This document shows, piece after piece, positions 1 through 20,800 of a stretch of DNA of 64,000 nucleotides. The translations under genes were made by a program, and so were the position numbers. The notes below the pieces were generated by a model, which was not told the origin of the DNA, made no database searches, and was given only the letters and a program-made list of their open reading frames with translations. The stretch's first letter is position 1, and each line of letters starts with the position of its first letter. This DNA is from Magallana gigas (lineage: Eukaryota): the NCBI RefSeq assembly GCF_963853765.1, contig NC_088857.1, positions 33,046,001 through 33,110,000 on the forward strand, given 5' to 3'.

Positions 1-760
1 ACATTGTCAACATTGCCAATATTTCTTTGCCGTTTACATCGTCGACATTGTCGACATCGCAACGTTGACGATGTTGAACCTATATCGAGTTTTCATCGTC
101 AACATTGCCGATATTTCTTTGCTGTTAACATCGTCGACATTGTCGACATCGAAATTTCGACGATGTTGAACCAATATCGAATTTACATTGTCTACATCGC
201 GAGTAGAAATATACAATGTAAGACATATAAAATATCACCATGTTGGTCATCATTGCGATACTGACAATGTCGACGATGTAAACAGGATATAAGAGGTACG
301 ATGTAGACACGATATCTACACGATGTCGAGCAACATTGCGATGTCGACGGTGTAAACAGGTTATAAGAGGTACGATGTAGACACGAAGTCTACACGTTGT
401 TGATCAACACTGCAATGTCGACGGTGTAAACAGAAAAGGAGGCACACGATGTATACACGGTATCGACTCGATGTCGATCAACATTGCGATATCGACTATG
501 TAAACAGGATATAAGAGGTACGATGTAAACACGATGTCGACCCGATATCGATCAACATTGCGATGTCGATGATGTAAACAGGAAACAAGACACTCGATGT
601 GGACACAATGTCGACTCGATGTTGGTTAACATTGCGATATCGAAAGTGTACACAGAATATGAATGGTACGCTGCAAATGCAAATTTAATAATTATACTAA
701 TATGATATTAACACAATGTCTACTCGATATTGGCCAACATTGCAATGTCGTCAATATTGA
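1..760. repeat. CpG-rich tandem arrays in inverted orientation (foldback-like)
   Basis: AACATTGCGA-type unit starts at 332, 406, 480, 554, 628 (74-bp period), with a further copy at 736. A second array has a ~92-bp period (8, 100). GTTTACATCGTCGACATTGTC (32-52) is the exact reverse complement of 263-283. Confidence 0.8.
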
Positions 761-1771
761 TAAAACATTGTGCATTGGACATACCTCCTCGATAGAGATT
801 CCTTCTTCAACATGCTCAAGGGTTTGTTTTAAGAGCAAGCACTCCAAGCAGCCCTACTAAACAGATCGAGAGCTCTTTTATGTAGAATCGACAATTTATG
901 TACTTGAAAATTGCGAGTTATGAGGAACAAATTTATGTACTTGAAAATTGCGAGTTATGAGGACCAAATTTTAATCATATCATATCTATACTCTGTCCTG
1001 AGTTTTTGATTCCACCACTTTTTGCTTGATATTTCGATAATCATATATGCCTTTGTGCTCAAACTACGTTCATCCACTAATAAGAAAAATGTCCAGATTA
1101 TCTAACAGTAACCTAATTCCGCAAATTTGCAAACAAATGAAAATATTCTCATTTTTGCTCTATATTTTGCATTGGGAAGTATAGAGCGCAGGTCTGCTCA
1201 AGTGCGATTTTAACATATGTTTTTCTTCAAATAGTTATATATATTATACTAAAAAATGGTACTTGAGCAAGCCTGAGCTTGATGTTTCCCAGTCGAAAAA
1301 CCATTGGAAAACACCCATATTTTGCTACAAAACGTCAATTTATCAAAATAATGCAATCATCATGACGTCATTTCTACATTATGAGGTCACTGCTGTGATA
1401 ACCTTTAACACCTTTATTTCCAATATGATTTTAACTATCTTTTCACTTATTTTTTAAGCTCTTTCTAAAACTTTGATTTTGGGGGGCAAAAAATGCATAA
1501 AACCGCACATAGGCCATTGTTTTGGTTCCTGTGAACTTTTATGAGTGAAAAATGATAACTGTTTAATGAGGATGTCTTTGATATATTCCCTTTTATCGAT
1601 TTCAACTGTTAAATTCTTTCAAAGGTATGTGTATTTTTATCAAAATCATCAAAAAGTGATTGAAGCAATAACTTGGGACAAACTATAGTTCTTTAAATGT
1701 AATAATACACAACTGTCTTGAAAAAATTAATACATGTATACAGAGAACATGAACAGTCATGTTTTCTTCAG

Positions 1772-2017
1772 TTAGGCCACACCAATATAATTTCTTGTTT
1801 GTCGGACCCCGCACTCTCGTTTTTTAATAAAACTACACAAATGATATACCGGTAATTAATAATAATTTAAATTTACAATTTCAGGAAATTCTGCACTGTT
1901 TTATTTTCTATTTCCGCTTTTATTTTTCGCATTTTAAATAGTCTTATTAAATTAATTTATCAGAAACAAGTAGAAGAAATATAATCGTCTGCACAAATTT
2001 ATTAATGTACGGCCTAA
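1772..2017. mobile_element. Possible short MITE
   Basis: TTAGGCC at 1772 and GGCCTAA ending 2017 form a short terminal inverted match around ~245 bp of AT-rich DNA; weak. Confidence 0.3.
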
Positions 2018-2345
2018 AAATTTTGGCTACAAGTCATTTAGAAATAGAAATGTTTTTTAATTGTTCGCACACTCGTATCTTTTTTCACTGGCCTTACGTG
2101 TTGATAATAAAGTATAATACCCCTGGTATCAACAGATAAAACTTCTAGTTTCATGAATAAACATCTGAACATTTAAAAAAAAAAATCCTGTTATTTAATT
2201 CTATAGATAAGGCAATATCATCATAAAGTAGAACTTTACAATGTACAATGTCAATTCTTGCTGAAAAATATCAACAAAGGCAAGCTTTTGCCTCAGCTCT
2301 CATAGACAATGTATTAATCTTCATGTGTGTTATGTTTAATTCCAG

Positions 2346-2456
2346 ACTACTGTCCAGTATTTAACCTAAACGCTAAAGGGTTTGATGCAGTACCTTGTGA
2401 TCCGCAGAGAGGAATATGTTCATCTCAACAATTCCAATCTAGAGACGTGTTCAAAT
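2346..2456 (+). CDS. Exon encoding Cys-rich ectodomain segment
   Basis: ttccag acceptor and gtaag donor; phase 1-1; YCPVFN...PC...C...SRDVFKY, continuing PGCL in the next exon. Confidence 0.75.
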
Positions 2457-5400
2457 GTAAGGAAAGCATGATTTTTTGTTGTTTTGTTATGTTTTTAGCT
2501 TACCTTAGCCAAAGGATCAAGTAAGCTTTCCTGATCAAAGTTTATCTGTTGTCTATCATCGTTGTCTTGTTGTGGTAAACTTTTCACATTATTCAATTTT
2601 CTTCACCAAATCCATCAGACCAATTTTAACCAAACTTGGCACAAAGCATTATTTGGTGAAGGGGATTTACGTTTGTTCAAATGAATGCATGAAGGGCCAT
2701 ACCCTCTTTAAAGTGGAGATAAAATTTGTTGGTATTTTTCAAAAATCTCTTGGCCAGAAAAGCTGAAACTTGTGTAGAAGCATCCTCAGGTAGTGTAGAA
2801 ACAAGTTTATTCAGATCCTTATCCCCTGGGGTATGCTTGGGCCACAATGATGGTGGGGGGGGTTGGTCAAATTTTTACATTCATGTAGAAGTATATAGAG
2901 AAATATGCTTTAAAATCTTCTCAATAACTATTTGGCCAGAAAATCTAAAACTTGTATGGAAGCATCCTCAGGTAGTGTAGATTCATGTTTGTTTAGTTCC
3001 CTATCCCTGAGGGTAAGGTGGGGCCACGGTGGGGGTTGGGGTGGAGGAGGGGGGGGGGGGGGGGGTTAGTCGACTTTTTGATATTCAATTTTGTTTAAAC
3101 CAGGCTCTCTAGAAGGGGGTAGATGTTTTTATTTCTTATTCTCAAAAACTGATATGAAACTGAAACAACAAAAGTAGCTAAATGTTTAACTTAAGAATAT
3201 GTGGAGAAAAAATTGGAAATTCTTTATAAACAAGGTATACTCTACTAAGTTGTCTATTTATTTTACTGGTGTATTTGATACTCATAAGACAACCTAAAGC
3301 TTTTTGTTCAATTATGGTAGCTGCAGGTCTGTAGCTCCTTATCTAAACAAAATTTAGATGGATGACCTTAGAGCTAAAGTTCCCTATGTATTAAAAAGGT
3401 TGCAATATACAGCACACTAAAAATTGAACTAGTATTGGAATGATTAACCTTATTTACACACAACATGCACAAATTCAGTTGAAATAATTATTACCATTAA
3501 ATTCTTCAGACAATTTACCACACATGACATATTGTCACTTTACTTGCTTCTAATATTCTTTTAAACACCATCACCAGCCCCATAAAGTAAGGTAATGTTG
3601 TGTTTTTGAATTTAACATACTTCATTTTCCAAAGTCAGTGTGTTTTAGAGAAAGTCTGAGGCAAGTAAAAAGACGACTTCATTCAGTCATATTCAGACTG
3701 GGAGCTACAAACCTGCAGCTACAGTTTTGGCTATTTTTACTCAGATGAGGGATGTGGCCTAGGTACATGCAATTTCATACCCTTAATTTTAACGCTACCC
3801 TTTTATTCACATGTCTATTTCTACCTACTTCATCTCCCGCATCCAACTTCAATTCAAATAAAATTCTACCATGTTTCTATGAAATTTGTTTTTCTTTTGC
3901 AGCCATCCTGTAAGTCATTATAGATAAAATCTCTTGATGGTTTGAAATTATAGGGCATGACTTGAATCTAGAGCTACAAACAATTTTTTGGTACTTATTT
4001 TTTATGAAATATATCAAGATTAAACAAGATGCCAAGGAACCACATTTCTCTATCTCCCTGAAAAGAACTCTTTCTCACTGTGCATCATGTTCATTTTAAA
4101 CTCTTCCATGCTTGGATCAATGGTTACCTGAAAAGTTACGAACTGTTGTCAGTGAGAGAAATCACCAGGCGAACGTGTGAATGATGTAAAGTCATCCTAC
4201 ATAAAACATTTGTGTGAGGCCTCAGGCTACTAGGCTTTTTGTAAGATATATAGTCAAAGCCACAATACTGACTGCTGCATACATGTCCCATTAAAACATG
4301 GGGCATGATTAAGACACGCAGAATTTCATTGATGTGAATTTCTGATGAAGTTTGAACTGTTTGATTATATTCAATCATAAAATGTTTATCTTTTCCCACC
4401 TTTAGATCCAGGCTGTCTGAACTTCACAAGACAACCACCAGAGTAAGTTTTTTTTCTCATAATTTTTTCCAGTGATACATGTACAATAAAATCAAGAGTG
4501 GTAATAAATACCAACAAAATGTATACTTCAAATAAAGAAAACATTCAGTAGCAGTAAAAATTCAAATTCAAATACAGGTATATTAGTATCGAATGTATAT
4601 TTACAGTGTTTTAATTTACACCAGAGGATTGTTGATTTTTTATGTTATCCAGAAATAAAATTTATACCATAAGACACTTTTTTCATTCATTCAAAATGTG
4701 ATTTTGGTAAAAGGTGTTCAGTGACCTTGAACCTTGCATACAGATCAAAGGCCAAGGTCATAGCAATCTTCTTTGTGAAATCCTTATTCAGGCCATTTAA
4801 TTATAATATCCCTTTGGCCTGAACTGGCTCAAATATCACCCAATAGTTCCTTTGTGATAAGTGTGCAGTGACCATGTCAAAACTCAATGCAAGGTCACAA
4901 CAGACTCCTGTTTAAGACTTGTAAGTCCTAGTCTGGACCACTTTGGTCCAATTTGACTTACTGTAGATTCCTAATTAAATGCGAGAAATTAATATCTGTG
5001 TAAAATTGCAAAAAGCAGCCCTCGCGGATTTTGAAATCTCGCTTTTATTTTTAAGACAGTTTTGTACTTTAGGAAATTATAACAAATAATTTGTGCCTGC
5101 GATTTTGTATTCTTACGATTGGATACAAAACAGTGGTATCGCGGAATAAAGTACTCACGTAATATAAGGAATTTACGGTATACTTACCAAATGACTGCAT
5201 GTAGGTACATGTAGTAACTGTGCAGTAACCTTAAGCCACAAAACAGGACATAGCAATACCATTTGAATTTTTAAAAAATAATTTGTTTATGGTTTCTTTG
5301 AATACAGCGTTGTTCATAATGGTGGCATGAAGCTTGGGCCCAACTTCCTACCAATGATTGCGGGGGCAGGGGTCGCTGTGGCTACCTTAGTGGTCATCGG

Positions 5401-8331
5401 CATTTGTTGTGTCTGGTACTGTAGAAGGAGAAGTGGAGGATCAGGTACGCTTGTTAAGTTTGACCTGCTATTTATTACTTGATACTGTTGTTGGATAGGA
5501 AAACGGAAGCCCATGACCTTGTTCAGATATGGTACATGTATCATTGTGTACAAGTACGGTAAATGACGTTGTTTTGATTTTTACATCTTATAGACATGGT
5601 TAGCATCTTTTTTTTTTTAATAATTCAGTCGGTCATTTAATGATATCAAGGGATAAAAGCCACCCTGATAAAAGAAATTAAAGTAAAATGAAATCTACTG
5701 TTTGTTTTGATTATTACTTGCTCTAATGAATATATATAAAATACATGGTTACTGTCTTGAAATATAAGCTATACCGGTATTTGGGCGAGGGAAAGAAAAC
5801 ATGACAGAGGGCAAGGCTTACCAAGCCCTCTTCATGTTTTTCACCCGAACCCAAATATCACTTATATTTCAAGACAGTTATCATGTATTTAATACATATT
5901 CACAAGTCTGTTCAAGAAGTGTTTACTTTCTTATCCTCAAAAGTACAAGATGGCCGCACATCCCCCTTGAAAGCAAGAGGTTATATTGGGGGCATTGACC
6001 GAATATAGCTTTGGTTTATTTGGTTACTTTTTTTTGGTCAATGCAAAGGGTAGCTGCAGGATAAATAATCAAAGTCAGTTAATTTGCATGTTTAAATTCA
6101 ACAACTATTGAAAAGATAAGCAGTATCTACTTTCATAATTCCTATTGAATTTGTCAAATAATCAGATGATCAAATGAATATTCAGTTCTATAATCAATAA
6201 GTGAACTCTAGTTATTTACATTTTCTCCAGAGTCATTTAACTGTAGAATTTTGATTGTAGAATTGCTGAAAATTATAGAAATATAAGTAAGAAGGAATCT
6301 TTCTTTGAACATTATGAGGTGATCATATACAATCAGACTTTAATTGATTTGATCACCCGGACCCTATTTGATCACCTTAAAATGCTCAAAGAATGTTTCC
6401 TTATTCCTTAAATTAAAGTTACTTTCAATGCCCCTGAAATTGAGAGGTGGATTTTGGTTTAGGGTGATAGTATTATATTTGTTTATCTAATACATGTGTA
6501 TCTTTTTAATTATATCACTGTGTTTAAAAAAATCTTTTTGAAAATTTGTTTCAAAACTTGTTGTGGTTCTTGGAAGTCAAAGAGAACTATGTACCGGTAA
6601 TTGTTTCTTGGTGGTTTTAAGTTGTTATTATGAAAGATGCAAATTAAAGTGTACTGGACCAGCATTGTGAGCAGTATGTTTACTTAATGATAATCTGTTT
6701 TCAGGGAAAAATAAAAAGGATGACATAGAGATGAGACAACCATTAGTAAAGAAATTTCCTGAAGGTAAAAAATGTAAATCTGGCCCATTTACTTATAGAA
6801 CTAAAACCATAACAATGCATTGTTTTATTATGAAGTACAAAAATGTTTGCATTTAGTTTTGAAAATAGAAGAACTGTAACTAACTTGCATTATTCTTTTA
6901 TTTTTGCTTCAATTTTTATATGTAAAAAGAAAAAAATGTATTTGTAAGTTCTTGAATATTCAGTTAGGGTTTTTCTTTTGATATGATGATACAAAATGAT
7001 TTTTTTTTCAAACAGAACTTCTCAGAACTTGTCATTATTTGACAGCCAATGTCTTCTACCCAACCAAAGTCTACACAAAATGCATAGGTTTGTTTGAGGT
7101 GCATGGCATTTTGACATTTGTCGGTCCCCATGGATCCGGGAAGACTACTAGTGCAGTCAATCTCCTTAGCAAGAAGGAAGGAACACAAATCAATGGCAAA
7201 AAATGTGTGGTTGAAATCTGCGAGTCAGTTGAAGAAGTTGGGAGTAAAATGGTTGAAGGTTGTGTTACTTTTGTGCTACTGGATGATGTTTTAGATCAGT
7301 ATGCCTATCAACCAGCACTGCTTAAGTCTCATAAAGAAAAATTCACAGATTTGAAAAAATTTATAGATGAAGGCAAGCTTCGATTGATATGCACTGTAAC
7401 AGATACAACGTGGAAAAATTGTGCAAAAGAGATTGGTGACTGCCCACTGTTCCATAAAGACTTTGTAGTTGAGTTAACAGAAAAGGCACTAGATAAGCAA
7501 GAAAAATTAGAAATACTGAAAAAACATATTGCCTACAACAAGTTTAATGTCACTCAGAAGAAGAAGGAAGAGAATTTGAAAACAATAGACAAGCGACATG
7601 CAAATAATTCTTTAATTACTATCCATGAAAAGACACTGCAAAACTGGGCAAAGAAAGCTAAAGCAAAAGGAGGGATTGGCATTCCACTTCTCTTTGATAT
7701 GATGTGTGTAAACAAACATTTGTTTGCATGTGCAGACACTCTTCTATCTGACAGCTTGGAAAATGTCTTGAAAATGCGAATTGATTTTGATGCTAAATCT
7801 TCAACAGGTTCCGACAGCAAGGATTATGTCTGTTTACTGCTTTTTGCAGCCTTTTTTGGCGGAAAAATTTCATTGGAAGATTTTAGAAAAAAAGGTGATA
7901 AAAGAAAGGAGGAAGTATATGTTAGTATTTGCAGTAAGAAAGGTTGTAGTATAAAAGAAGAGAATAAAATTGGAGAATTGTTGAGGTCAGATGAATTGAG
8001 CGGGTATTTTTACCCTCTGGGAGATGCCAATGTATTTCATCACAAAGTTTTGACTCCTTTGCTTTTATCGATTATTGCTAAAGAAGACGAGGTCTTAGTT
8101 TTGAAACATGCCGAACTTGATGTTCTTTTTAAGGTTCTTCAACCTCAGAAATCAAAGTATCCATTCGCAGTAACAGTAAGCGAGAAGGCATTATTGTCAG
8201 ATCTAATTCCAAGAATTTTGGAAGCTCCCGAAGTCATTGGTAAATGGAAACGGCACGTGGTCATGCAATCAGAAAAACTGAAAAAGCAATTGGAAAATCC
8301 ACCGTCCTCGGATGGAGAGAAGAAGAAATGA
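2346..8331 (+). CDS. Type I membrane protein: Cys-rich ectodomain + TM + cytosolic nSTAND3-type P-loop NTPase (5'-incomplete, ~553 aa visible)
   Basis: Exons 2346-2456, 4406-4442, 5308-5444, 6705-6764, 7016-8331; all AG/GT junctions join in frame (intron phases 1,2,1,1). Joined translation: YCPVFNLNAKGFDAVPCDPQRGICSSQQFQSRDVFKYPGCLNFTRQPPDVVHNGGMKLGPNFLPMIAGAGVAVATLVVIGICCVWYCRRRSGGSGKNKKDDIEMRQPLVKKFPEELLRTCHYLTANVFYPTKVY...GPHGSGKT...FVLLDD. Confidence 0.8.
2492..3010 (-). mobile_element. HINE/Helentron-like non-autonomous element fragment with ~166-bp satellite units
   Basis: Begins with the reverse complement of the 3' hairpin end seen at 33625-33667 and 39095-39140. Contains GAAGCATCCTCAGGTAGTGTAGA, the reverse complement of the satellite core. 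Confidence 0.7.
4961..5178. mobile_element. Tc1/mariner-type MITE
   Basis: Imperfect TIRs (CTGTAGATTCCT / AGGAATTTACGG) flanked by TA at 4959-60 and 5179-80. Confidence 0.65.
5308..5444 (+). CDS. Transmembrane exon
   Basis: tacag/gtacgc boundaries; encodes the hydrophobic stretch IAGAGVAVATLVVIGICCVWYC followed by the basic stop-transfer motif RRR. Confidence 0.8.
7016..8331 (+). CDS. Terminal exon: nSTAND3-like NTPase with helical/winged-helix region
   Basis: Uninterrupted 430+ aa ORF. Has an FYPTKVY pre-P-loop segment, Walker A GPHGSGKT, Walker B FVLLDD, GxP-type GIGIPLL and an FHH motif. The acceptor aaacag at 7015 is in frame with the ORF. Confidence 0.85.
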
Positions 8332-11099
8332 AGAGGAAATGCATTGCAGTTTTGATTCACTCTGAAAGTACATCTATATCATGTAACAAAAGTTTTATTA
8401 GGACAGAGAAGAATTCTTTATTTTTTGTTTTTGAAATGTGATCAAACCTGGTATATAATCATGCTAATGACAAGCTTAGAAAATAATCAGTGTTTTTCTG
8501 TGTATTCTCAAGACTTTGCCACTCTTATTCAGAGTTTAAACGAATCGTGATTTTTTTTTTGGTTGTTTTTTGAAACCATGTCCTGGATTCATGTTCGAAT
8601 AAAGAATGACAGCATAAAAAATGCGCGAGAAATGCCATGTACTTTGAATTGTTTAGAGGCAGCAAGTGCAAGTACTCATAAACTCGATTTTGGTGATGTG
8701 GGAAAGTTTTTTTTTTACAGATAAGGTTTGACCCAAAAGGAACCGTTATCTTACTGCCAAGAAGAACTGCATACTTGCATGTTGTTGTACATGTACATGT
8801 GAAGTGGAACCCAATTATATAGATGGACATGTCATATAATTTAATACATAATTTTTTATACGTTATGTTTTTACGCTTGTGTGAATTAAAAAAAATATAT
8901 GTATAAACATTGATTTGAGCTGAAGTAACATTATTCCGACTTTTTTATAATCTGACAATATCAGGAGGAAATATGGAGAAGAAATACATTATTGCAGCGA
9001 ACATTATTCTGTTTTTATCATTATTACACATGTATCATAACTCAGAAGTAGAGGTTTTCCAAAAAAAAAAAGTTGATTAGCTAATTGAATATCAATTGTA
9101 AGTGTCACTTACATCAAAGTTCTATGGAGAAACAATATCGGATTAGAATAGACTTATTAATGAACCAGATCTGGTTACAATGATCAGGTTTGACATTCTT
9201 GGGAATGATTAATGGATAGACGACTTCTTAATTGTGATTTTTTGTTTGCTTGACGAATATGTCAATGACATCGTTAAAATTTGATAAACCATCGTGGACT
9301 AGAAAATATCTCATGAGTGTCTTTGTAAACTCTTAATCGAGTTGAGTATCAGCTTACCTTTAGATGTTGTTAGTAATTGGTGTTTGTTTGTGAATAGGAT
9401 TGTAATTTTGTGGTATTGTGATCTGAATTATTACATACAGGTACATGTATTACATTTTATCGTCAATGTTTATGTTGACACTGGACAAAAACCATTTTTG
9501 TGCAATAACCAATTGTTGTGTCTGAAACAATCAATTTATACATTTATTCTTACCGTTCTTTTTTGGGGTGTACCTGCATGCTATGTCGTAAAATGTTGAT
9601 AATGTTCGCTGCAAAGGAAGCATTTCTTACACGTTTTAGTAAAGACTATCGCTTTGATTATCCATCAAGTCAATGACTTGTTTTCCTTTACAATGGATTG
9701 AATAACACTACCCCTCCCCCAAAAGAGTATTTTATTCCCCTGTTCGCTGTTCAAACAGCATTATTCGATTATTCCAAACTTTTCATTGATTTGGCACTGT
9801 ATTTGAGGGATGATGATATTATAAATGTAAAACAATATGATAAATCAATGATTATTCTTTAATTGTTTCATGAAATAACATTAAAATTAGAAATAATATA
9901 ATTATGTTAGAAGCACCCTACTAAGACCACGTATTTCAAATTTCACAAAACTCGGTTAATCGTATGATATCCATGACGATAAAGCTTGTCAGACATGTTA
10001 CATGTTATAACTTTGTTAAACACCTGTGTACTATATACATGTAGTTACCAATGCTTCTTTGAGCCGAGGATCCATTGAAATCTCATGCAAATAAACATAA
10101 GTAAGCATGTTGAAATGTTGCACAAATATTGAGAAGAGTCGTATTTATATTCCTAATACTCCTAAATGTAAACACAGTTACCAACTTGTGTTACACGTAA
10201 TATTATCAAGTGCCATATATATATAGAGAGAGAAACCTTGTATAGATATCTAACCATGGACTTTGTGTCATTTTATTAACATATTTTAGAAATGTATATT
10301 AGCTAAATACATGACTTATAAGTTAATGTCAGGTAATGTTCGCTCCTCATTGCTAAATATGTACAATTCAAAGTGTCTTAAATCTTGAATGTGTTTATTT
10401 GTTGTGGATTTTTTATATTCTGAATATTTTAATTAAACGCATTCCAATTTCACATGCATTTATTATCGTATTTTTTTTAATAATTATAGTTGATGATATC
10501 CTTAACTCATCTTTGAATGTTAATCTTTAAATAAAAACAAACAACGTATTTGAGACATTTGACTAATGATTCATGCAAAGAGAAGAGCCATATACATATT
10601 TTTGTGATATAATTTTTTAACTATGCTAAATGTTAACCTAGTTCTTCTTAATTTAAGTGTAAATTTGTATAACAATAACAGATTATTTGGCACATTTGTG
10701 TAATGAATCTTGTTAAGAGAAGAACTCTTAAATACGATAATTTTGTCAAACCCTTTTACATTGTAAATTCAGAAGGTAGAACTAAGTAGCTTTGCACAGA
10801 AAATTATATTGAAATTTTTCTATAAAATATACTAGTTTTTTATTACATTAATTTGTTTTATGTTGGGCAGTATCAAGAATTTTTTGTACTATTTTTTTAA
10901 TTTTCAAATTACTGTTATATTTTGATTAAGACGTTATAGGCAAATAACCTCTGTGTTGTATTCTAAATGCAAGTGTTAACCACTATGAAATAGCAAGTCT
11001 GCTATTTGACTATATGTTGCTTACATAGAAATAAAAATGTTGTATTAAACATACTCGTTTATGTTGGAATTATTCAGAAACAATCTATCGAACAGTGGT

Positions 11100-14265: not shown

Positions 14266-17200
14266 TTATCCATCGTCTTCTTCTTCCTCGTCCTCATCAG
14301 ATGACTCAGCTGGTTTCTCCCCGAACATATCTTCCCCTTCGTCCTCAATACTAGGCATGTCGCTGGACATAAGCTTTAAGATGACGATTTCTGGGATATC
14401 ATGCAGCCCGAAAGTGATCACGCGGCCGCTGTTAACAACGTGACAACAGGTTATTTTGGTGTCAGGTGAGAAAACTGCAAGTAAAACACCTCTTTCAATA
14501 TCCCACACAGAGATGTCGCCTGCGAAAACTACAGCACGAGTGTCATTATCGACGATAAAAATTTTGCTTAATTCATTAAATTCCAAACCATCGATGTTTT
14601 TGATTTTCCGAAGAGAAGGAGTTTTTTGTGGTTCCCATATGTGTATTTCTTTGTTTCCTTTTCCGATGATAACTTTCGAAGCATCTTCACTGATACCGAG
14701 AGCCATCACGTTGCTTTCATTCTTTAGTCGTTTCTTCACCACGCCTTCAAAGCAATCCCACAAGGTAACATAACTAGTTCTCTGCTCCTCGTCATAATTT
14801 GCCTGTACAAGGTAGTTCCCGGTGTGTGTTAGAGAGGCTACAAGCAAAGATAGCATAGACGTGTCACTCTCAAGAGTGGTCATATGCGTGTGATTTTCGA
14901 TGTCAAACACACACATGAAATGTGCAAAGAAAGATGCAACGGCGATATTCTGATCTCCACTGAGAAGGTACCTATCAATGCCACTGCTGCTGATCTCCTT
15001 CTTCAATTCTTCCACTCGTTGTCGCTCAATGTCAACAGCGGCATCTCTACGACGTTGTTTTGCAGACAAAGATTCTACACGGCGCTCCCATGGTGTCAGT
15101 TTGGCTGTATGACAGCGATCTTTTGCAAGCGACATTACGTCAGTTTCAGCTATCTTCTTTTCCAGATCCTTTAACATTGGTCGTATACGATGTTCCACTT
15201 GGCCGTTTTTTAAGTTCCAGATAACAAAGTGTGACCGGTTTTCAGAGAGTCCCAGCAGCATTTCATCCTTTAGCATGACGTACTCATGAGAAGGACATGG
15301 CGTTATAAAGCATTTCTTGATTTTCTTCACGAACTTTTTCTGAAGCAGGTCATAAATTAGGACGGTCTGAAAGACAGGGCGAGCGTTATCCTTGGCGTTT
15401 GCAATGCCTTTGTCAGTTAGAACAACTACTTTTGTGTCCCTCACCACAACAATATCGGATGAATCGGACAGACTACGTTCAATTCTGACCGCCGATTTCA
15501 GTTGTTTTGCTCTTGCTATGTTCCACACGCTGACGGGACCATTATTAAATTGGCGGGCCACTGCATATCGGGGGTTTTTAGTCATGGACATGATTTGATA
15601 AACACCAGACTGTTTCTTCAGTCTAGGCATTGACTGGTTAATTTTGCCTGTGAGATTCCATATGTTGAGCGTTTTATCGTTTCTACCTGCAGTAAGACAG
15701 TATTTGAAGTCTGCACATGCGCCTAGCACTGAAGCTCCAGCGTGACGAGCCAAATGTTTATGGTCTTCTGTTTCTATATTCCACACTGCTATGTCTGACG
15801 TGTTTGTTTCTTCGCTGGCACAAATAGCAATTGCATGTGATCCAATATAGTTAATGTGAAGGTCCTTGATTTTATCATGTATGCAACCTCGAACACTTCG
15901 TAAATACTTTCCTCTCTTCAAATCAAAAAGTTCCAGTTGGTATATTTCATGAAGTTGCATGTAATGCTGTCTGCAAGCCACGATGTAATAATCTCGGGAT
16001 ATACCTAGACTTATCACAGCTGAAGAATGGTCATTGCACTTCAGTGATAGAACCTGTTTTCCGTTCCGAACGTTGTTGACAAGCGCACAGTTGGCTCCCC
16101 TCGAGGCATGCAGGATCCGTTCATCAAACGAAAAGGGTGCAATCAGAGCGGAATTGTCTTTGTACACTCTGTGGTTTTCTGTGTGAGCCTCACTAATCAT
16201 CGGATAGCCCGCTTTGTTCAAGTTCCATGTTCGCAAAGTATTGTTCCCATCAAATAAGGCACATAGATACTTCCCTTCTCCTGCCATACCAATCACGGGC
16301 GGATCAGGGTACTTATCTACGCGTAACACGCGCTCTGAAAACCGAAGATTCCAGACCTGAATGACGTTTTCCTCCACGGTAATAACGAAAGCAACGTTAT
16401 ATCCAACACGTATTCTTGTGATGTTTGTGCCCACGTCATGAATGGTTTTCATCACTTTCCCAGTCCTCAGGTCCCACATTTTCATCGTGTTATCTTTAGA
16501 GGCAGTAAAGGCTTTTCCACCATCTGATGTAACTTCGACTGCTGTAATTGGATCCGTGTGCCCAGAGAGCAAATCGAATAAAATTCCTCCGGGTTCTGTC
16601 AGGCATCGAATGGATGGAATCAAAGCAGGAAGTGATGGTTCGTGAGCCTGTTTAAGTAAAGCGTGGATGTATGGATATCTTGGGGGGTCCCCGGGTGCTC
16701 TTGGTATGTCGTTAGCAATGATAGTCGCCAAACGCCCAACAATTTGAGATGCTAGCTGTCGTGGATCTTTTGATAGTGCCTTCGCTGAAAGTTGAATAAC
16801 ATCTGACATCATCTTCAGTTCAGAATCGGTTGGTTCTACCGATAATCCTGTTTGGTACTCTTCTACAAGAGACCGCAGTGATGTCCCACAGAGCTTTGCA
16901 TGAATCCATTCAAAATGGCAGAGAGATTCTGATTTGTACAGAGCTATTTGCTGTGAATTGAGAAGATGGTATGGCAATTCGTTCACCTTTCTCACATTGT
17001 AACTTCTATCAGATCCATCATGATTATTTTCGCATGGTTCGTAGTAAAATGGCTGCTTTGATACATAACGGAGGACTCCTTTCTCGCTACCCGTACACGG
17101 CTTTGGTTTCGACGCCCACACTCCCTGAAAATATTCAGCCATGACTTTGTGGTATGAAGGTGCTTTATCTCGGTTTTGAAGATACCGGTCATCTGCCGCT

Positions 17201-17858
17201 TGGTGAAACTGGGAATGCGCCCAAACATAGGTGATTACGCCATACGTTAGTGTTGGCGTAAGAAGATCGGATAAGTCTTCAAGTAGTCTAATCCATAAGA
17301 CGCTTGGACAACGCCGCTTTGATGGTCTATAATTAGCCATTACATCATCCATCACTGCCTCATCTAGTGAAAGAATATCCTCCATTTCAATGGAAGCAAT
17401 TCCTTCACGAGAAGCTGTAATGTACCCTAGCGCACGTCTCACTAATGGTTCACCATGTTTCGACTCAAGTTTTCCAAATTTTAATGCAGCCAATTTTGTA
17501 ATTGTTTCTGAAAGCTTGCAGTTTTCAATCTCCGTGAAGGATGACCATGATTTTGATTCCATGAATGCTAATTTGAGATAAAGAGGTAATGAGCATTTGT
17601 TGTAAGCTTTTATGATGACGTCAAATTGATGTTGCGTTAATTCACGATTGTCATGTTGCAACCAGTACTTAAGTATCGACTCTGCGTCTTCTTGTGGCAT
17701 ATTGGGAATCGCTAATGTGATATCTTTGTTTGATCCGTAGACTTTCATAAGGCCTGGAAAACTTTCAAATTGTTCTTCAGGGTTTGTTGTTATTATCATT
17801 TTGACGTTGTGTGGGAGTTCTTTTGGAAGCCAAGACATTTTGTGTCCTTCATGTTCGT
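14266..17858 (-). CDS. 3.6-kb terminal exon of the NWD-like gene (HD/WHD, helical region, WD40 propellers, acidic tail)
   Basis: 1190-aa ORF in the track; the acceptor at 17859-60 gives [12 protein letters not shown] in frame with the upstream exon. Confidence 0.92.
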
Positions 17859-20800
17859 CTGAAAGAAGAAATAGAGACGATGCAAAAACAGGTACATATC
17901 ATAACACGAATGTTGAAACTTCTTAACGTGTCTACCAGAAAAAACTTATCATGAACGTTTTTTCTTTCATGAACTTCACAAATGAAGAAAACTGTGACAT
18001 TTCTGTTCTTTCATTGACATTATTGGATATCAATGTTTCCTAATTTAGTACAAGTTTCGAGGACGATACGTAATTTCGTTGGTGATATGCCTTTCAATTA
18101 ATAAACTATGCTGACACATATCTAATTTTTTTAAATTGACTCAATGACAAAATCAACGATTTTAAAATAATCATTGGTGTTCATCGAATATATACATATA
18201 CATGTATATGGAATCAAATATATACAAATCCAAGGAAGATACATACCAGAAAGTTGGTCTACAGCGTCAAATATTAAAACTAACGGATCTGCTGTTGACG
18301 CATGGCCAAGTCTTTGGGCAAAGTCATTCACGAGTCCTTTGAATTCCTAGAATATTTAAAAAAAACCATGTTTACCTTTCAACCCTCTTTTCTGCATTAA
18401 AAAGGCTTATTATACATTGATTAATAATTTGTTGTTTGTTACCATTGGAACCTCCTCTGTTTTGCTTCCAAATATATGAGACATCTGTAAACATACACTA
18501 CGCAATAATGTTCGGACGTTTCTCGAGGCTGTTGTACGACCTACTGTCCTTATGATCACGTGGGATTTAATCCTAAAACCAAAAATAATAGACATAATTA
18601 CATTGTAGATACAATCTTTCATATTCGGGTTTTTGTGAACTATCAATAAATAAACTTACCCTTTGAACCATTTTTGAGTTTCGAGAGCTACTTTACAAGC
18701 AAGCGCCGTTTTACCACAGCCAGCTTTGCCATGTAAAATTAGAGGCAGACGACACTTTGACCGGATATACGATTTCACTGTTTGTAACAGTTCCCGTCTG
18801 CCTTGGAAATGCCGTCCTCTGTAAAAACAAAGAAGAGATATAGAAATAGTATCATAAAAATAAAATGGAAAATACACCTTAAAACAATTTAGTACCAAAT
18901 ACACAATTTTAGAGAGTCTGCATATGATATACCTTTCCTGACAAAGGGACACATGCTGTGAAATTTCCTGGTACAGTTTAGAAGTTGGGTCTATCTGCTG
19001 CACGTGTTCTGTGATGTGACAAGAAAACTCCCTTTTCAGCACCTCTAGTACTTGTTTGGACATCCGGTCTAGATAGAGGTGATGAGCACGGTTCTGTGCT
19101 GGCTGAACGCCTCCTTTGCTCCACTCGATCTCGTGGTTTAAGATGTGGTTATTATCCACCTATACAATGTAACATACATTAAAGATTCAATATACTAGTA
19201 GTTATACACCAAATTATTTTCAAATCAATATTGTCAGTTGAAGCATCAATATGATGTCTATTTTTATTCTTGAAAATTGTTCATACTTTTTCCGGAATGA
19301 TTTCCGTTTTCAGTTTTTGCATGTAAGATGTCTGAGGCTCGGACAACGTTTTGTCCTGTGTGGAACTTAAATCTGCGTAGTCGGCCATTGTCGAGTCTCC
19401 AAGATTACTTAGCAAGTCCGTAATGTTTCTATTGACAACAATGACGTCTTCCGTGACGTCGTCATTATTCAAGAGACATTGATCAAGTTCTTGTTCAAGG
19501 GCTGTAAAAGAAAATGAAACAAATTTGTTATCGAATTTGATAAAGGCATATTTATCTTTGATATTGATAAAGTACGAAAATATACGCCTGATGTAACTTA
19601 CAAGACGAAAAATAATTCTTTCTAGATTGTTCATCTTTGATGGCCAAATCCGCGAATTGATCCAAAAGTTTGCGTAGTTTTTGAACTGTTTCGTTCCACA
19701 TAATTCGACCTGATTCTCGTGTTCGTGCGTCCCCTCGGCTGTATTCCTTGATCACTGAGCTAAAATGACACATCAAAAAATGAAACTTCTGTTTCAAGAG
19801 TGGTTTTGACAATAAATCGATCGCGACATATCATATTCACACAAGAAAAAACTTTGTTCTTAACATATAAGCGGAAGCATTTTAGCTGACTAAGACGAAA
19901 ATATACTTTCGGTCAAGTAATCTTAATCTTACACTCAAATCTTAACCTTGTGTAGAAGGAAATTTTAAACACACCACCTTATGTTTTGGAGTCTGTACAC
20001 TGGCGGTAGACAATTCTCGTCCAGTTTATACCACTGACTAAGGAGATGAGGGCTTGGCATTGTTTCTTCTTTTACTTTCAGCGCTTTGATAATTTGTTGC
20101 TCCCTTTTGACCATGTCTGCCAAATTCCTGAACATATTAAGAGACTCCTTTCCCGTAGTTTCTTCCAGCTTAATGTTTAGATCCTGTGTTTTGAGGTGGT
20201 CCTTTTTTGTTACCTCCATAATCTGGCCTTCGGTGAGACCCTGTTGAATCTTCTTGTCGCGATCCTGTGACGCTGACTCGATTTCAGCGATTCTTTTTCT
20301 CATTTTGTCAACTTTCTGTTTCCATTCATGCAAGGACTGTTCGTGTATTGCGTGAAAATCGTCTACGGGAATCACAGACGGAAGAATGTAGGACCCATAC
20401 TTGTTTCCAAGAACGACCTACCATCAACAAACGTTAACAACGATAAGACGAGGACAATATAAATAACAGAAAAGTGTCTTTTACTAATTAACAATTCTCA
20501 ATTGTCAATGAGTCCATAGTCATGGACTCATTGACAATTAAGAACTGTTAATTAGTAAAAGACAAACGTTTTTTTATTTTTATTGTACTTGTGACGAGTG
20601 TCAAATGGCAAAGGTACTTTTATCATAGGAAGAATGTATAGAACGAATATATTTATAAACTGACCAATACGATCCCACCACTAGGTGACGTCTGACATTT
20701 CCGGAGGTAGTTAAGACACATGGACGGAAGGCTATGATCCTCTGTACTGTCGTCCCTAAGTCCCCAGTGTAGGTCGTGTATCTGGAGTTCAAACCCATGT

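Follow-up and report, generated by a model that had tools for sequence, protein, structure and literature searches.

In the window (the whole 64,000-nucleotide stretch of Magallana gigas DNA that was analyzed) lie exons 2 to 6 (or later) of an oyster gene that is expressed and that is a minimal, stripped-down variant of a computationally described, receptor-like oyster STAND family and not a new class. As established by sequence, Pfam, and hydropathy, its product runs from a Cys-rich N-terminal domain through one transmembrane (TM) helix and a short linker to an nSTAND3 NTPase (NOD) module, which is the order that a sequence-only reading of the same DNA had put forward. We propose, with about an even chance of being right, that the protein is a membrane-anchored minimal STAND with its ectodomain outside, which would act as an oligomerization switch at the membrane in an immunity-type pathway.

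Five exons on the + strand, spanning 2346–8331 and bounded by AG acceptors and GT donors, join in frame as predicted earlier, giving an open frame of 552 codons within the window that ends with a TGA stop at 8329–8331 (Table 1). The 5' edge of the window cuts the gene, such that its first 61 codons, with four of the eight ectodomain cysteines, are absent; when orthologue N-termini were compared with window positions 1–2345 by tblastn, residues 1–61 found no match, and the first coding exon is therefore placed outside the window. RNA contigs extend ~241 nt upstream of 2346, reading ...EVCMGSGWVQPN, and the exon at 2346–2456 is 92% identical to residues 62–99 of the orthologue P0006 (tblastn). 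Counting the part encoded 5' of the window, the full protein comprises ~610 residues. A 3' UTR extending to about 10976 is probable, as judged from contig L001, a transcript of a closely related gene that aligns collinearly at 79–82% identity from window position 7013 to 10976 (blastn), with reads of the species itself examined up to 8335. No paralogues of the gene were found within the window by tblastn.

Table 1. Coordinates of the gene features in the window, with the evidence or remarks for each.
Feature	Position	Strand	Evidence or remarks
Coding exon, mid 8-Cys ectodomain, Cys5 to Cys7 (YCPVFNLNAKGFDAVPCDPQRGICSS...)	2346..2456	+	Splice sites, frame, tblastn, RNA junction 2456/4406
37-nt micro-exon, ectodomain end (YPGCLNFTRQPP; Cys8 and NFT sequon)	4406..4442	+	Frame, tblastn, junctions 2456/4406 and 4442/5308
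Exon with short stalk, TM helix, RRR stop-transfer	5308..5444	+	Hydropathy scan and flanking charges on orthologues; RNA contig
Predicted TM helix FLPMIAGAGVAVATLVVIGICCVWYC	~5345-5422	+	Hydropathy scan on orthologues
RRR stop-transfer	5423-5431	+	Flanking charges
Exon with charged juxtamembrane linker (GKNKKDDIEMRQPLVKKFPE)	6705..6764	+	Frame, tblastn, junctions 5444/6705 and 6764/7016 (X1, X14 contigs)
Last coding exon: complete NOD module and stop codon	7016..8331	+	
nSTAND3 P-loop domain	~7054-7530	+	Followed by helical domain, winged-helix domain, short C-terminal helical extension
Walker A, GPHGSGKT	7123..7146	+	Column conserved in 85-93% of family members
Walker B, FVLLDD	7270..7287	+	DD conserved in 73-78% of family members
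Sensor-1 position, Thr (LICTVTD; CTVTD)	7399..7401	+	Family alignment; canonical nSTAND3 Arg (TSR)
GxP motif (GIP), helical domain	7678..7686	+	Pro conserved in 89% of family members
His-His of VFHHKVL, winged-helix end; counterpart of AP-ATPase MHD/LHD His	8038..8043 (FHH 8035-8043)	+	His in 80% of family members
Probable 3' UTR, same terminal exon	8332..10976	+	Collinear blastn match to contig L001

All four proposed junctions are supported by RNA, in contigs from three studies and in raw reads: 2456/4406 by contigs of X1, X14, and X9 and four raw reads of X20, 4442/5308 by contigs of X1, X14, and X9, and both 5444/6705 and 6764/7016 by contigs of X1 and X14. X1 record 3, a single contig of 414 nt, comprises the end of exon 2 together with the TM exon and exon 4 and continues for 189 nt into exon 5 (the last coding exon, 7016–8331), beyond Walker A, and it thereby links the TM exon to the P-loop on one transcript, as the sequence-only reading required. 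Over the exons, first mates of X20 map to the − strand, as expected for an mRNA of the + strand. The 'TGA' variant seen at 4439/5308 reflects a synonymous SNP adjoining the junction. Variants without part or all of the ectodomain are seen in transcript L001 and in C. virginica isoform X2; such transcript and isoform variants count against the switch that we propose.

Orthologues were found in at least four oyster species (LOC105342697 of C. gigas, LOC111134856 of C. virginica, and LOC133191024/LOC134241095 of Saccostrea), and the dN/dS of 0.36 overall, 0.27 for the P-loop domain, and 0.29 for the part of the ectodomain covered places the gene under purifying selection. The truncation of the gene by the window edge, with a 5' exon unseen in the genome sequence of the species itself, could suggest an artefact of annotation or assembly that merges two unrelated genes, or else a decaying copy. 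However, a single RNA contig reaches from the TM exon into the P-loop, every junction occurs in two to four independent data sets, and the NCBI models of four oyster species have the same exon order; together with the open frame and the dN/dS, this makes such an artefact almost certainly a wrong explanation, and the pseudogene or chimera reading was rejected. No paper on LOC105342697 was found in the literature, and the supplements of Kaur et al. do not list the gene or its orthologues. Proteins with the same domain order, a count of which had been suggested as a check, form 17 further clusters at 50% identity that combine ectodomain, TM, and NTPase; in the ESM Atlas, two clusters, with 78 and 92 mollusc proteins, combine the same ectodomain fold with nSTAND3, with or without Ank.

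The NTPase is a STAND of the nSTAND3 clade according to profile matches and structural modeling, and nucleotide switching and oligomerization are predicted for it; the STAND criteria follow Leipe, Koonin & Aravind 2004. Residues 13–171 of exon 5 match Pfam nSTAND3 (PF20720) with 67.9 bits and E 1e-18 (cut-off 27.2), as against E 0.018 for the runner-up family, AAA_22, and the orthologues match nSTAND3 with E 1e-19 to 1e-22, such that the earlier STAND assignment is borne out. A PDB sequence search with the family profile returned generic P-loop/AAA+ matches only (E about 1e-5 to 1e-6), which is uninformative for placing the clade, and structure comparison was thus needed. The predicted monomer model of the C. 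gigas orthologue displays, at high confidence, STAND-type NBD, helical, and winged-helix domains and no repeats. Over 270–320 residues including the winged helix, this model is matched only by the STAND structures MalT, NRC1 NB-ARC, and Apaf-1, which are also the only ones to align with its residues 425–600; AAA+ proteins match it over just ~200 residues.

The NOD comprises ~440 residues, and the protein ends ~95 residues past the winged-helix His. In agreement with the earlier observation that intracellular sensor repeats are missing, Pfam detects no C-terminal repeat family in the gene or its orthologues, and neither Pfam nor the predicted model reveals a death-fold, TIR, or TRADD-N domain. 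NACHT, NB-ARC, and LRR do not appear at threshold, the best NACHT match (E 0.0019, 18.5 bits vs. a cut-off of 26.7) coming from one orthologue, and the protein is not an NLR in the strict sense, i.e., NACHT/NB-ARC with C-terminal LRRs.

Thr occupies the sensor-1 position, at which the published nSTAND3 alignment has TSR, SVR, or TLR (PMC8195603). The same position reads TVQE or TAQE (Gln) in sister groups and T[SC]R in family members further removed; some of the sister groups also have a degenerate Walker B. The P-loop NTPase had been described as 'intact', a term that, because Thr replaces the sensor-1 Arg, holds for the Walker motifs only; the GxP motif cited alongside them is also present. 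Nucleotide hydrolysis or sensing may accordingly differ from that of canonical STANDs. Loss of sensor-1 or Walker B is often seen in regulatory, non-hydrolyzing paralogues, and helper/sensor NLR pairs and truncated regulators act by nucleating or dampening the assembly of a partner. It is conceivable, albeit unlikely, that the protein is such an adaptor, helper, or decoy, in which the ectodomain and TM serve only for anchoring, sorting, or homotypic packing and have no sensing role, and the NOD would hetero-oligomerize with nSTAND3 paralogues bearing ankyrin, TRADD-N, or death-fold domains, nucleating or dampening their assembly at the membrane. The loss of the sensor-1 Arg throughout the orthogroup and its sisters points in this direction, as do the degenerate Walker B of some sisters, the lack of an effector or sensor domain in the protein itself, the many paralogues that share the NOD and ectodomain and add ankyrin or B-box modules, and the ectodomain-less isoforms. 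Nevertheless, hetero-oligomerization is purely conjectural, Walker A/B, GxP, and His are intact in the orthogroup, and the ectodomain is the best-conserved part of a protein under purifying selection, which would be unexpected for a mere anchor.

The N-terminal domain comprises ~95 residues with eight invariant or near-invariant Cys and two to three conserved NxS/T sequons. It matches no Pfam family and, by Foldseek or an exhaustive aligner, no PDB structure, and it was found in molluscs only; no Pfam family was matched either by the C-terminal 277 residues or by the ectodomain+TM proteins without a P-loop (P0044, P0063, P0066). Ectodomain relatives were gathered by an exhaustive phmmer search. 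As a query for a word-based search, the C. virginica ectodomain retrieved orthologues only, and a language-model atlas search with the ectodomain scored < 0.9; both were superseded by the exhaustive phmmer and fold searches. In some oyster paralogues, the 8-Cys domain follows a signal peptide and precedes TM and nSTAND3, with or without ankyrin repeats, and in others it stands ahead of ankyrin repeats alone or of B-boxes. The sequence-only reading took the sensor to be extracellular, a role that is putative for the ectodomain. Since there are paralogues that keep C-terminal ankyrin repeats along with the ectodomain, the latter is not a simple replacement for an intracellular sensor. Between species, the ectodomain is the most conserved and not the most variable region (70% vs. 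53–63%), a pattern more in keeping with a ligand that is conserved or endogenous, or with a structural role, than with an arms race with pathogens.

Prediction gives a single-pass protein with its N-terminus outside, on the basis of one TM helix (hydropathy 2.5–3.1), a positive-inside flank (RRR/KK on the C-terminal side in orthologues), and extracellular hallmarks. The helix is fully hydrophobic and rich in small residues (AGAGVAVA), and the charged linker of ~45 residues between it and the NBD has no Pfam match and appears as a low-confidence coil in the model. An extracellular location of the Cys-rich domain is very probable, given the eight Cys, the sequons, the basic TM flank, and the signal peptides and Ser/Thr-rich stalks of dozens of paralogues; signal-peptide-like leaders together with such stalks occur in at least 13 paralogue clusters and in most of the 34 in another set. 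We infer a membrane protein (plasma or endomembrane) whose Cys-rich domain faces the outside or the lumen and whose NTPase is cytosolic. None of the four annotated orthologues has a signal peptide, their models starting 10–12 residues before Cys1 without a hydrophobic leader, and at the C. virginica locus the ATG lies just 3' of a possible acceptor site, which is compatible both with the presence and with the absence of an upstream signal-peptide exon. Type III insertion is proposed because the annotated orthogroup lacks a signal peptide. The crossing of a membrane by an N-terminal disulfide-rich domain of 110–120 residues without a signal peptide is unusual and counts against our preferred explanation.

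For the preferred reading, that of a membrane-anchored oligomerization switch, the protein would have two states, as in other STAND proteins, and pass between them: a closed monomer with nucleotide bound and an oligomer with NTP bound. Clustering of the ectodomain/TM by a ligand, or a change in its conformation, would make it easier for the NOD to oligomerize at the membrane, and the assembled ring or its C-terminal helices could then recruit a separate partner, which is needed because the protein itself lacks an effector domain; candidate partners are paralogues bearing death-fold, TRADD-N, or ankyrin domains. Precedents for this mechanism are the oyster proteins of Kaur et al. (PMC8195603) and AjNLRC4 (PMC8699970). 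Outside-in signaling, proposed from the architecture, is plausible, and the pathway is probably one of innate immunity, cell death, or self/non-self recognition, as read from family context only. A bolder version, which we regard as a long shot, takes the 8-Cys domain as a new fold that serves as a homotypic or endogenous-ligand module, whose contact-driven clustering would directly nucleate a membrane-apposed STAND ring, with converging TM helices or C-terminal tails as a resistosome-like output, e.g., in allorecognition or in the defense of oysters against transmissible neoplasia.

In a further, very improbable reading, the TM segment itself would be the effector, and an NTP-driven ring would bundle the N-terminal TM helices into a pore or channel. 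Analogues would be the N-terminal helices of the resistosomes formed by plant CC-NLRs and, in bacteria, the TM effectors of STAND defense proteins. The NBD N-termini of STAND rings come together on one face, the TM helix here lies close to the NBD, the Foldseek matches of the NOD include a wheat resistosome and Avs5, and, with no other effector domain present, the TM helix is left as a candidate. However, the idea is purely geometric, the helix has no polar face, and bulky disulfide-rich ectodomains would crowd the pore mouth.

STAND/NLR switches are textbook cytosolic sensors, and the behavior of such a switch when wired to the cell exterior is documented, to our knowledge, by one echinoderm case and otherwise by computational catalogues. 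With a single helix joining an orphan ectodomain to a bare NOD, the gene represents the smallest natural receptor-STAND wiring among those seen here, and its small size makes it a tractable construct, which could be used to ask whether extracellular clustering leads to STAND oligomerization, what the output of a NOD without sensor or effector is, and which ligand the 8-Cys domain binds. If the endogenous-ligand reading is true, it would be the simplest natural 'clustering-to-oligomerization' converter. Additionally, the lineage-specific expansions of oysters, which are immune-like and poorly annotated, gain a well-supported gene model.

The sequence-only reading had suggested from this architecture a surface receptor-STAND signaling class with no characterized example known to it; that such a class would be new and without precedent does not survive comparison with the proteins of Kaur et al. 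2021 (PMC8195603), AjNLRC4 (PMC8699970), and the Anthozoan TM-NLRs (PMC3879445). Apaf-1, CED-4, plant NB-ARC proteins, and MalT are related to the gene here in sequence via the nSTAND3 profile only; in place of their cytosolic CARD, CC, or TIR, it has an N-terminal TM helix and an ectodomain as anchor, and it lacks an effector domain and the sensor-1 Arg. The Anthozoan NLRs with N-terminal multi-TM regions, noted in 2013, are early putative membrane-bound metazoan STANDs of the NACHT type (Yuen, Bayes & Degnan 2014, Mol Biol Evol 31:106; PMC3879445). In these uncharacterized proteins, a gap-junction-like region with three to four TM helices accompanies NACHT plus LRR, and, unlike in the gene here, there is no Cys-rich single-pass ectodomain.

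AjNLRC4 of the sea cucumber Apostichopus japonicus is a membrane NACHT receptor that dimerizes on Vibrio binding (Chen et al. 2021, PLoS Pathog 17:e1010145; PMC8699970); its role as a surface receptor has been shown by experiment, and its output is actin- and Arp2/3-driven phagocytosis. Like the product predicted for the gene here, it is an invertebrate membrane protein with an extracellular recognition domain (putative in the gene here), an intracellular STAND NTPase, and no CARD or LRR. However, AjNLRC4 has a NACHT-clade NTPase, an Ig ectodomain, and two predicted TM segments in place of nSTAND3, the orphan 8-Cys domain, and one TM, and the sequence relationship is limited to the P-loop fold. 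By analogy, the ectodomain might bind microbes or glycans, with the NTPase mainly as a protein-interaction platform for the cytoskeleton or trafficking rather than an oligomerizing switch for death or inflammation. That the sole characterized invertebrate membrane STAND works in this way (PMC8699970; related AjNLR-new, PMC13133943) and that a death-fold or TIR output domain is missing from the gene speak for such a phagocytic or adhesion receptor, which we nonetheless consider decidedly unlikely, given the other NTPase clade and ectodomain, the conjectural binding, and the links of family relatives to TRADD-N and death-fold domains.

Closest to the gene here are the oyster proteins with the order Cys-rich region–TM–TRADD-N–nSTAND3–ankyrin on which nSTAND3 was defined (Kaur, Iyer, Burroughs & Aravind 2021, eLife 10:e70394; PMC8195603), including a receptor-like form reported as 'TM + cysteine-rich region + TM + ... 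+ nSTAND3 + ankyrin'; their description is computational only. Compared with these proteins, the gene here lacks a signal peptide, the DED/alpha-rich region, the NCOA6-clade TRADD-N, and ankyrin repeats, has ~45 residues between TM and NBD and ~610 residues in all vs. 740–2660, and carries Thr for the sensor-1 Arg. Common to both are the lineage, the nSTAND3 clade, and the logic of a Cys-rich extracellular region, a TM, and an intracellular STAND. The themes of nSTAND3 with Ank and of B-boxes described by Kaur et al. both recur in oyster proteins that carry the 8-Cys domain, which, as compared by shared architectures, is likely their 'cysteine-rich region'.

The five exons proposed by the sequence-only reading are joined into a single open frame of 552 codons, and their splice sites, the frame and the RNA junctions all agree. 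RNA data were aligned over window positions 2340-8335. The 2456/4406 junction is crossed by contigs from three RNA runs of three studies (X1, X14 and X9) and by four raw poly-A reads (X20), the 4442/5308 junction by contigs in X1, X14 and X9, and junctions 5444/6705 and 6764/7016 by contigs in X1 and X14. The decisive check on that reading was whether the TM exon is spliced to the exon at 7016. X1 record 3, a single contig of 414 nt, runs from exon 2 through the TM exon and exon 4 into 189 nt of exon 5, beyond the Walker A codons; since it crosses both, the TM and NTPase exons lie on one RNA. First mates of stranded raw reads fall on the - strand across the exons, which fits a + strand mRNA. 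The rival explanation that the gene model is an artefact is contradicted by these data, by NCBI models with the same exon order in C. gigas, C. virginica, Saccostrea echinata and S. cucullata, and by a dN/dS versus a close relative of 0.36 overall (0.27 for the NBD and 0.29 for the ectodomain part). The architecture, expression and conservation of the TM-nSTAND3 gene are established.

Positions of the gene and its downstream neighbour in the window
Feature	Position	Strand	Remarks
Coding exon 1 in window	2346-2456	+	AG acceptor, GT donor
Exon 2 in window	4406-4442	+	AG acceptor, GT donor
TM exon (exon 3 in window)	5308-5444	+	AG acceptor, GT donor
Exon 4 in window	6705-6764	+	AG acceptor, GT donor
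NTPase exon (exon 5)	7016-8331	+	AG acceptor, GT donor; stop TGA 8329-8331
Cytosolic STAND gene, NWD1 type	14266 to about 21620	-	NACHT start, NWD1 winged helix, WD40 propellers
1190-aa ORF	14266-17838	-	HTH_NWD1 + WD40
ORF with NACHT Walker-A start	18656-19159	-	Part of the NWD1-type gene

The 5' part of the gene lies beyond the window edge. Window 1-2345 contains nothing that matches residues 1-61 of the C. gigas orthologue (P0006, XP_011448024.1), and RNA contigs extend past 2346 in the upstream direction by about 241 nt, with the sequence ...EVCMGSGWVQPN, exactly what the orthologue has before YCP. Because the edge cuts the gene, Cys5-Cys8, the second half of the ectodomain, are in the window and the first half is not. 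At the other end, a collinear match to a related transcript contig indicates that the 3' UTR of the terminal exon probably reaches about 10976. Relatives vary in their isoforms at the 5' end and internally (L001 1-60; P0014; P0017), and some of their transcripts or isoforms lack the ectodomain in part or completely. In L001, the transcript contig of a closely related gene, an alternative 5' exon contains an in-frame stop, so that the first ATG comes only after Cys4, and C. virginica isoform X2 starts immediately before the TM helix, without the ectodomain. C. gigas isoform X1 carries an extra 12 residues (FHRTCHFYSQTE) between exons 4 and 5.

Intron 1 (2540-3140) contains a duplicated repeat element, with copies at about 2726-2800 and 2930-2990, and a G-run of about 25 at 3040-3066. 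In every run the repeat has an RNA word depth between 5,000 and 120,000, and hundreds of reads continue from it into sequence of a different kind. The element is interspersed, multi-copy and highly expressed, and does not belong to the mRNA of the gene. At window 1-540, overlapping ORFs on both strands with repetitive translations (…VDNVDDVNS… / …HRRHCRHRNVDDV…) suggest a tandem minisatellite upstream of the gene part. Downstream, the NWD1-type gene, a classical cytosolic STAND gene, stands tail-to-tail with the TM-nSTAND3 gene at a distance of about 3-6 kb. Since the same neighbour, of 2063 aa (L002 27236-33118), adjoins the C. virginica orthologue, the pairing is conserved synteny, with no functional link implied.

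The NTPase scores best as nSTAND3, as had been proposed, and not as a non-STAND family: exon 5 residues 13-171 match the Pfam profile with 67.9 bits (cut-off 27.2; E 1e-18), while the runner-up, AAA_22, has an E of 0.018, and the orthologues give the same picture. The description of an intact P-loop NTPase holds for Walker A (GPHGSGKT), Walker B (FVLLDD) and GxP (GIP), but not for sensor 1, where canonical nSTAND3 has an Arg, as TSR in the published alignment. This position is Thr in the orthogroup (LICTVTD) and Gln in sister groups, and the Arg is kept in more distant family members. Conserved family columns comprise Walker A, the Walker B DD, the GxP Pro (89%) and the His at the winged-helix end (80%; FHH, 8035-8043).

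Because a profile search against PDB sequences gave only generic AAA+/P-loop matches, the C. gigas orthologue was modeled with AlphaFold2 from an 81-sequence family alignment (mean pLDDT 90.4) and structures were compared. Relative to the window protein, the ectodomain part of this orthologue is 96% identical, the NBD 89%, the helical/winged-helix part 80% and the C-terminal tail 93%. The model matches MalT (13.6; 306; residues 176-602), the NRC1 NB-ARC (13.4; 271; residues 184-535; 18% identity) and Apaf-1 (12.1; 322; residues 165-616), as well as the AAA+ proteins p97, Rpt and DnaA (12-13; about 200; about 170-425). From these aligned ranges, the AAA+ matches are limited to the NBD and first helical lid, and the STAND matches add the winged helix. 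Together with the conserved columns, the structure matches therefore assign the C-terminal 265 residues, as modeled, to the NOD helical and winged-helix arms plus a short helical tail, with no hidden sensor or effector. Pfam profiles detected no repeats, death-fold, TIR or TRADD-N in the window protein or its orthologues, and the proposed lack of C-terminal sensor repeats is upheld.

Full orthologues carry 111-123 residues, with 8 invariant or near-invariant Cys and 2-3 conserved NxS/T sequons, ahead of one strongly hydrophobic helix directly followed by RRR/KK. The ectodomain alignment delimits a domain of about 95 residues, CP..W..C..YHC..E.C..W..CP.YN..C..CP..S..VYKY.C. Models of four species show no signal peptide and start 10-12 residues ahead of Cys1. 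A hydrophobic N-terminal leader precedes the 8-Cys domain in at least 13 ectodomain clusters, and also in most of the 34 clusters that make up a second subgroup, found with P0097. In several clusters a Ser/Thr-rich stalk separates the domain from the TM helix. Given these leaders and stalks in paralogues, the domain is very likely extracellular or lumenal, and since paralogues carry leaders before the same domain, the orthogroup reads as a type III (signal-anchor) variant. Modeled alone, the domain reaches a pLDDT of 90.5; it has no match in Pfam or, by Foldseek, in the PDB (best E 1.7), and by prediction is an orphan fold. Its ESM Atlas matches are confined to mollusc clusters, two of which carry nSTAND3 (78 members) and nSTAND3 with ankyrin repeats (92 members).

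When 1.84 billion cluster representatives were searched exhaustively with phmmer, 95 clusters were found, and these were sorted with profiles built in the analysis. Ectodomain, TM and P-loop are combined in 17 additional 50%-identity clusters; about 25 have ectodomain and TM only, many of them short and some with degenerate NTPases, and in the remainder the NTPase stands alone. The named members are, without exception, Ostreidae 'uncharacterized proteins'. In oysters, the ectodomain-TM unit occurs with nSTAND3 alone, with nSTAND3 and at least 10 ankyrin repeats (P0081, P0133, P0152), with ankyrin repeats but no nSTAND3, or with B-boxes (P0145). P0139, a Magallana gigas UniRef model of 926 aa with the 8-Cys ectodomain, POU and homeobox, is probably a mis-fused prediction.

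We propose that the protein is oriented N-out, C-in, with the NOD as a nucleotide-dependent oligomerization switch whose assembly at the membrane would be favored by clustering or conformational change of the ectodomain/TM unit. As the protein has no effector domain, output would pass through a separate partner protein. Conservation between C. gigas and C. virginica is highest in the ectodomain (70% identity, compared with 63% for the NBD and 53% for the helical/winged-helix part), a pattern that points to a ligand that is conserved or endogenous and not to an arms-race sensor. The ectodomain-sensor version of the sequence-only reading is tempered by paralogues that retain ankyrin repeats beside the ectodomain, and likewise by the ectodomain-less isoforms and the absent sensor-1 Arg. 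These same features speak for a less likely rival, an anchor-only adaptor or decoy serving paralogues; the retained Walker A, Walker B and GxP motifs speak against it. Bundling of the single TM helices into a pore is a further, unlikely rival to the proposed membrane-assembled switch.

The Cys-rich-TM-nSTAND3 order, the single transcript and the absence of repeats stand, but the claim of a new 'receptor-STAND' class without a characterized example does not, since it is preceded by the oyster proteins of Kaur et al., AjNLRC4, a second echinoderm TM-NLR and anthozoan TM-NLRs. Kaur, Iyer, Burroughs and Aravind (2021) described the same joining pattern in Crassostrea lineage-specific expansions and proposed that receptor-like architectures allow external stimuli to set off an intracellular switch (PMC8195603). 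Their 'cysteine-rich region', as in XP_022297444.1, XP_019920469.1 and XP_022302851.1, judged from shared architectures rather than compared sequences, would correspond to the 8-Cys domain. The gene and its orthologues are absent from their tables, a TRADD-N protein collection (PMC8195603), and the window gene differs from their oyster proteins in having no TRADD-N/DED, ankyrin repeats or signal peptide. AjNLRC4, a sea-cucumber membrane NACHT receptor, is the characterized case: it binds microbes, dimerizes and drives phagocytosis (PMC8699970), and a phagocytic receptor of this kind is a less likely rival reading of the oyster protein. A second echinoderm TM-NLR was published in 2026 (PMC13133943), and N-terminal TM helices in anthozoan NLRs were noted in 2013 (PMC3879445). 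The gene belongs to a receptor-like STAND kind already known from computational description, as a minimal variant joined to an orphan ectodomain fold, and its value is that of a small, clean, expressed and conserved test case rather than a new class.
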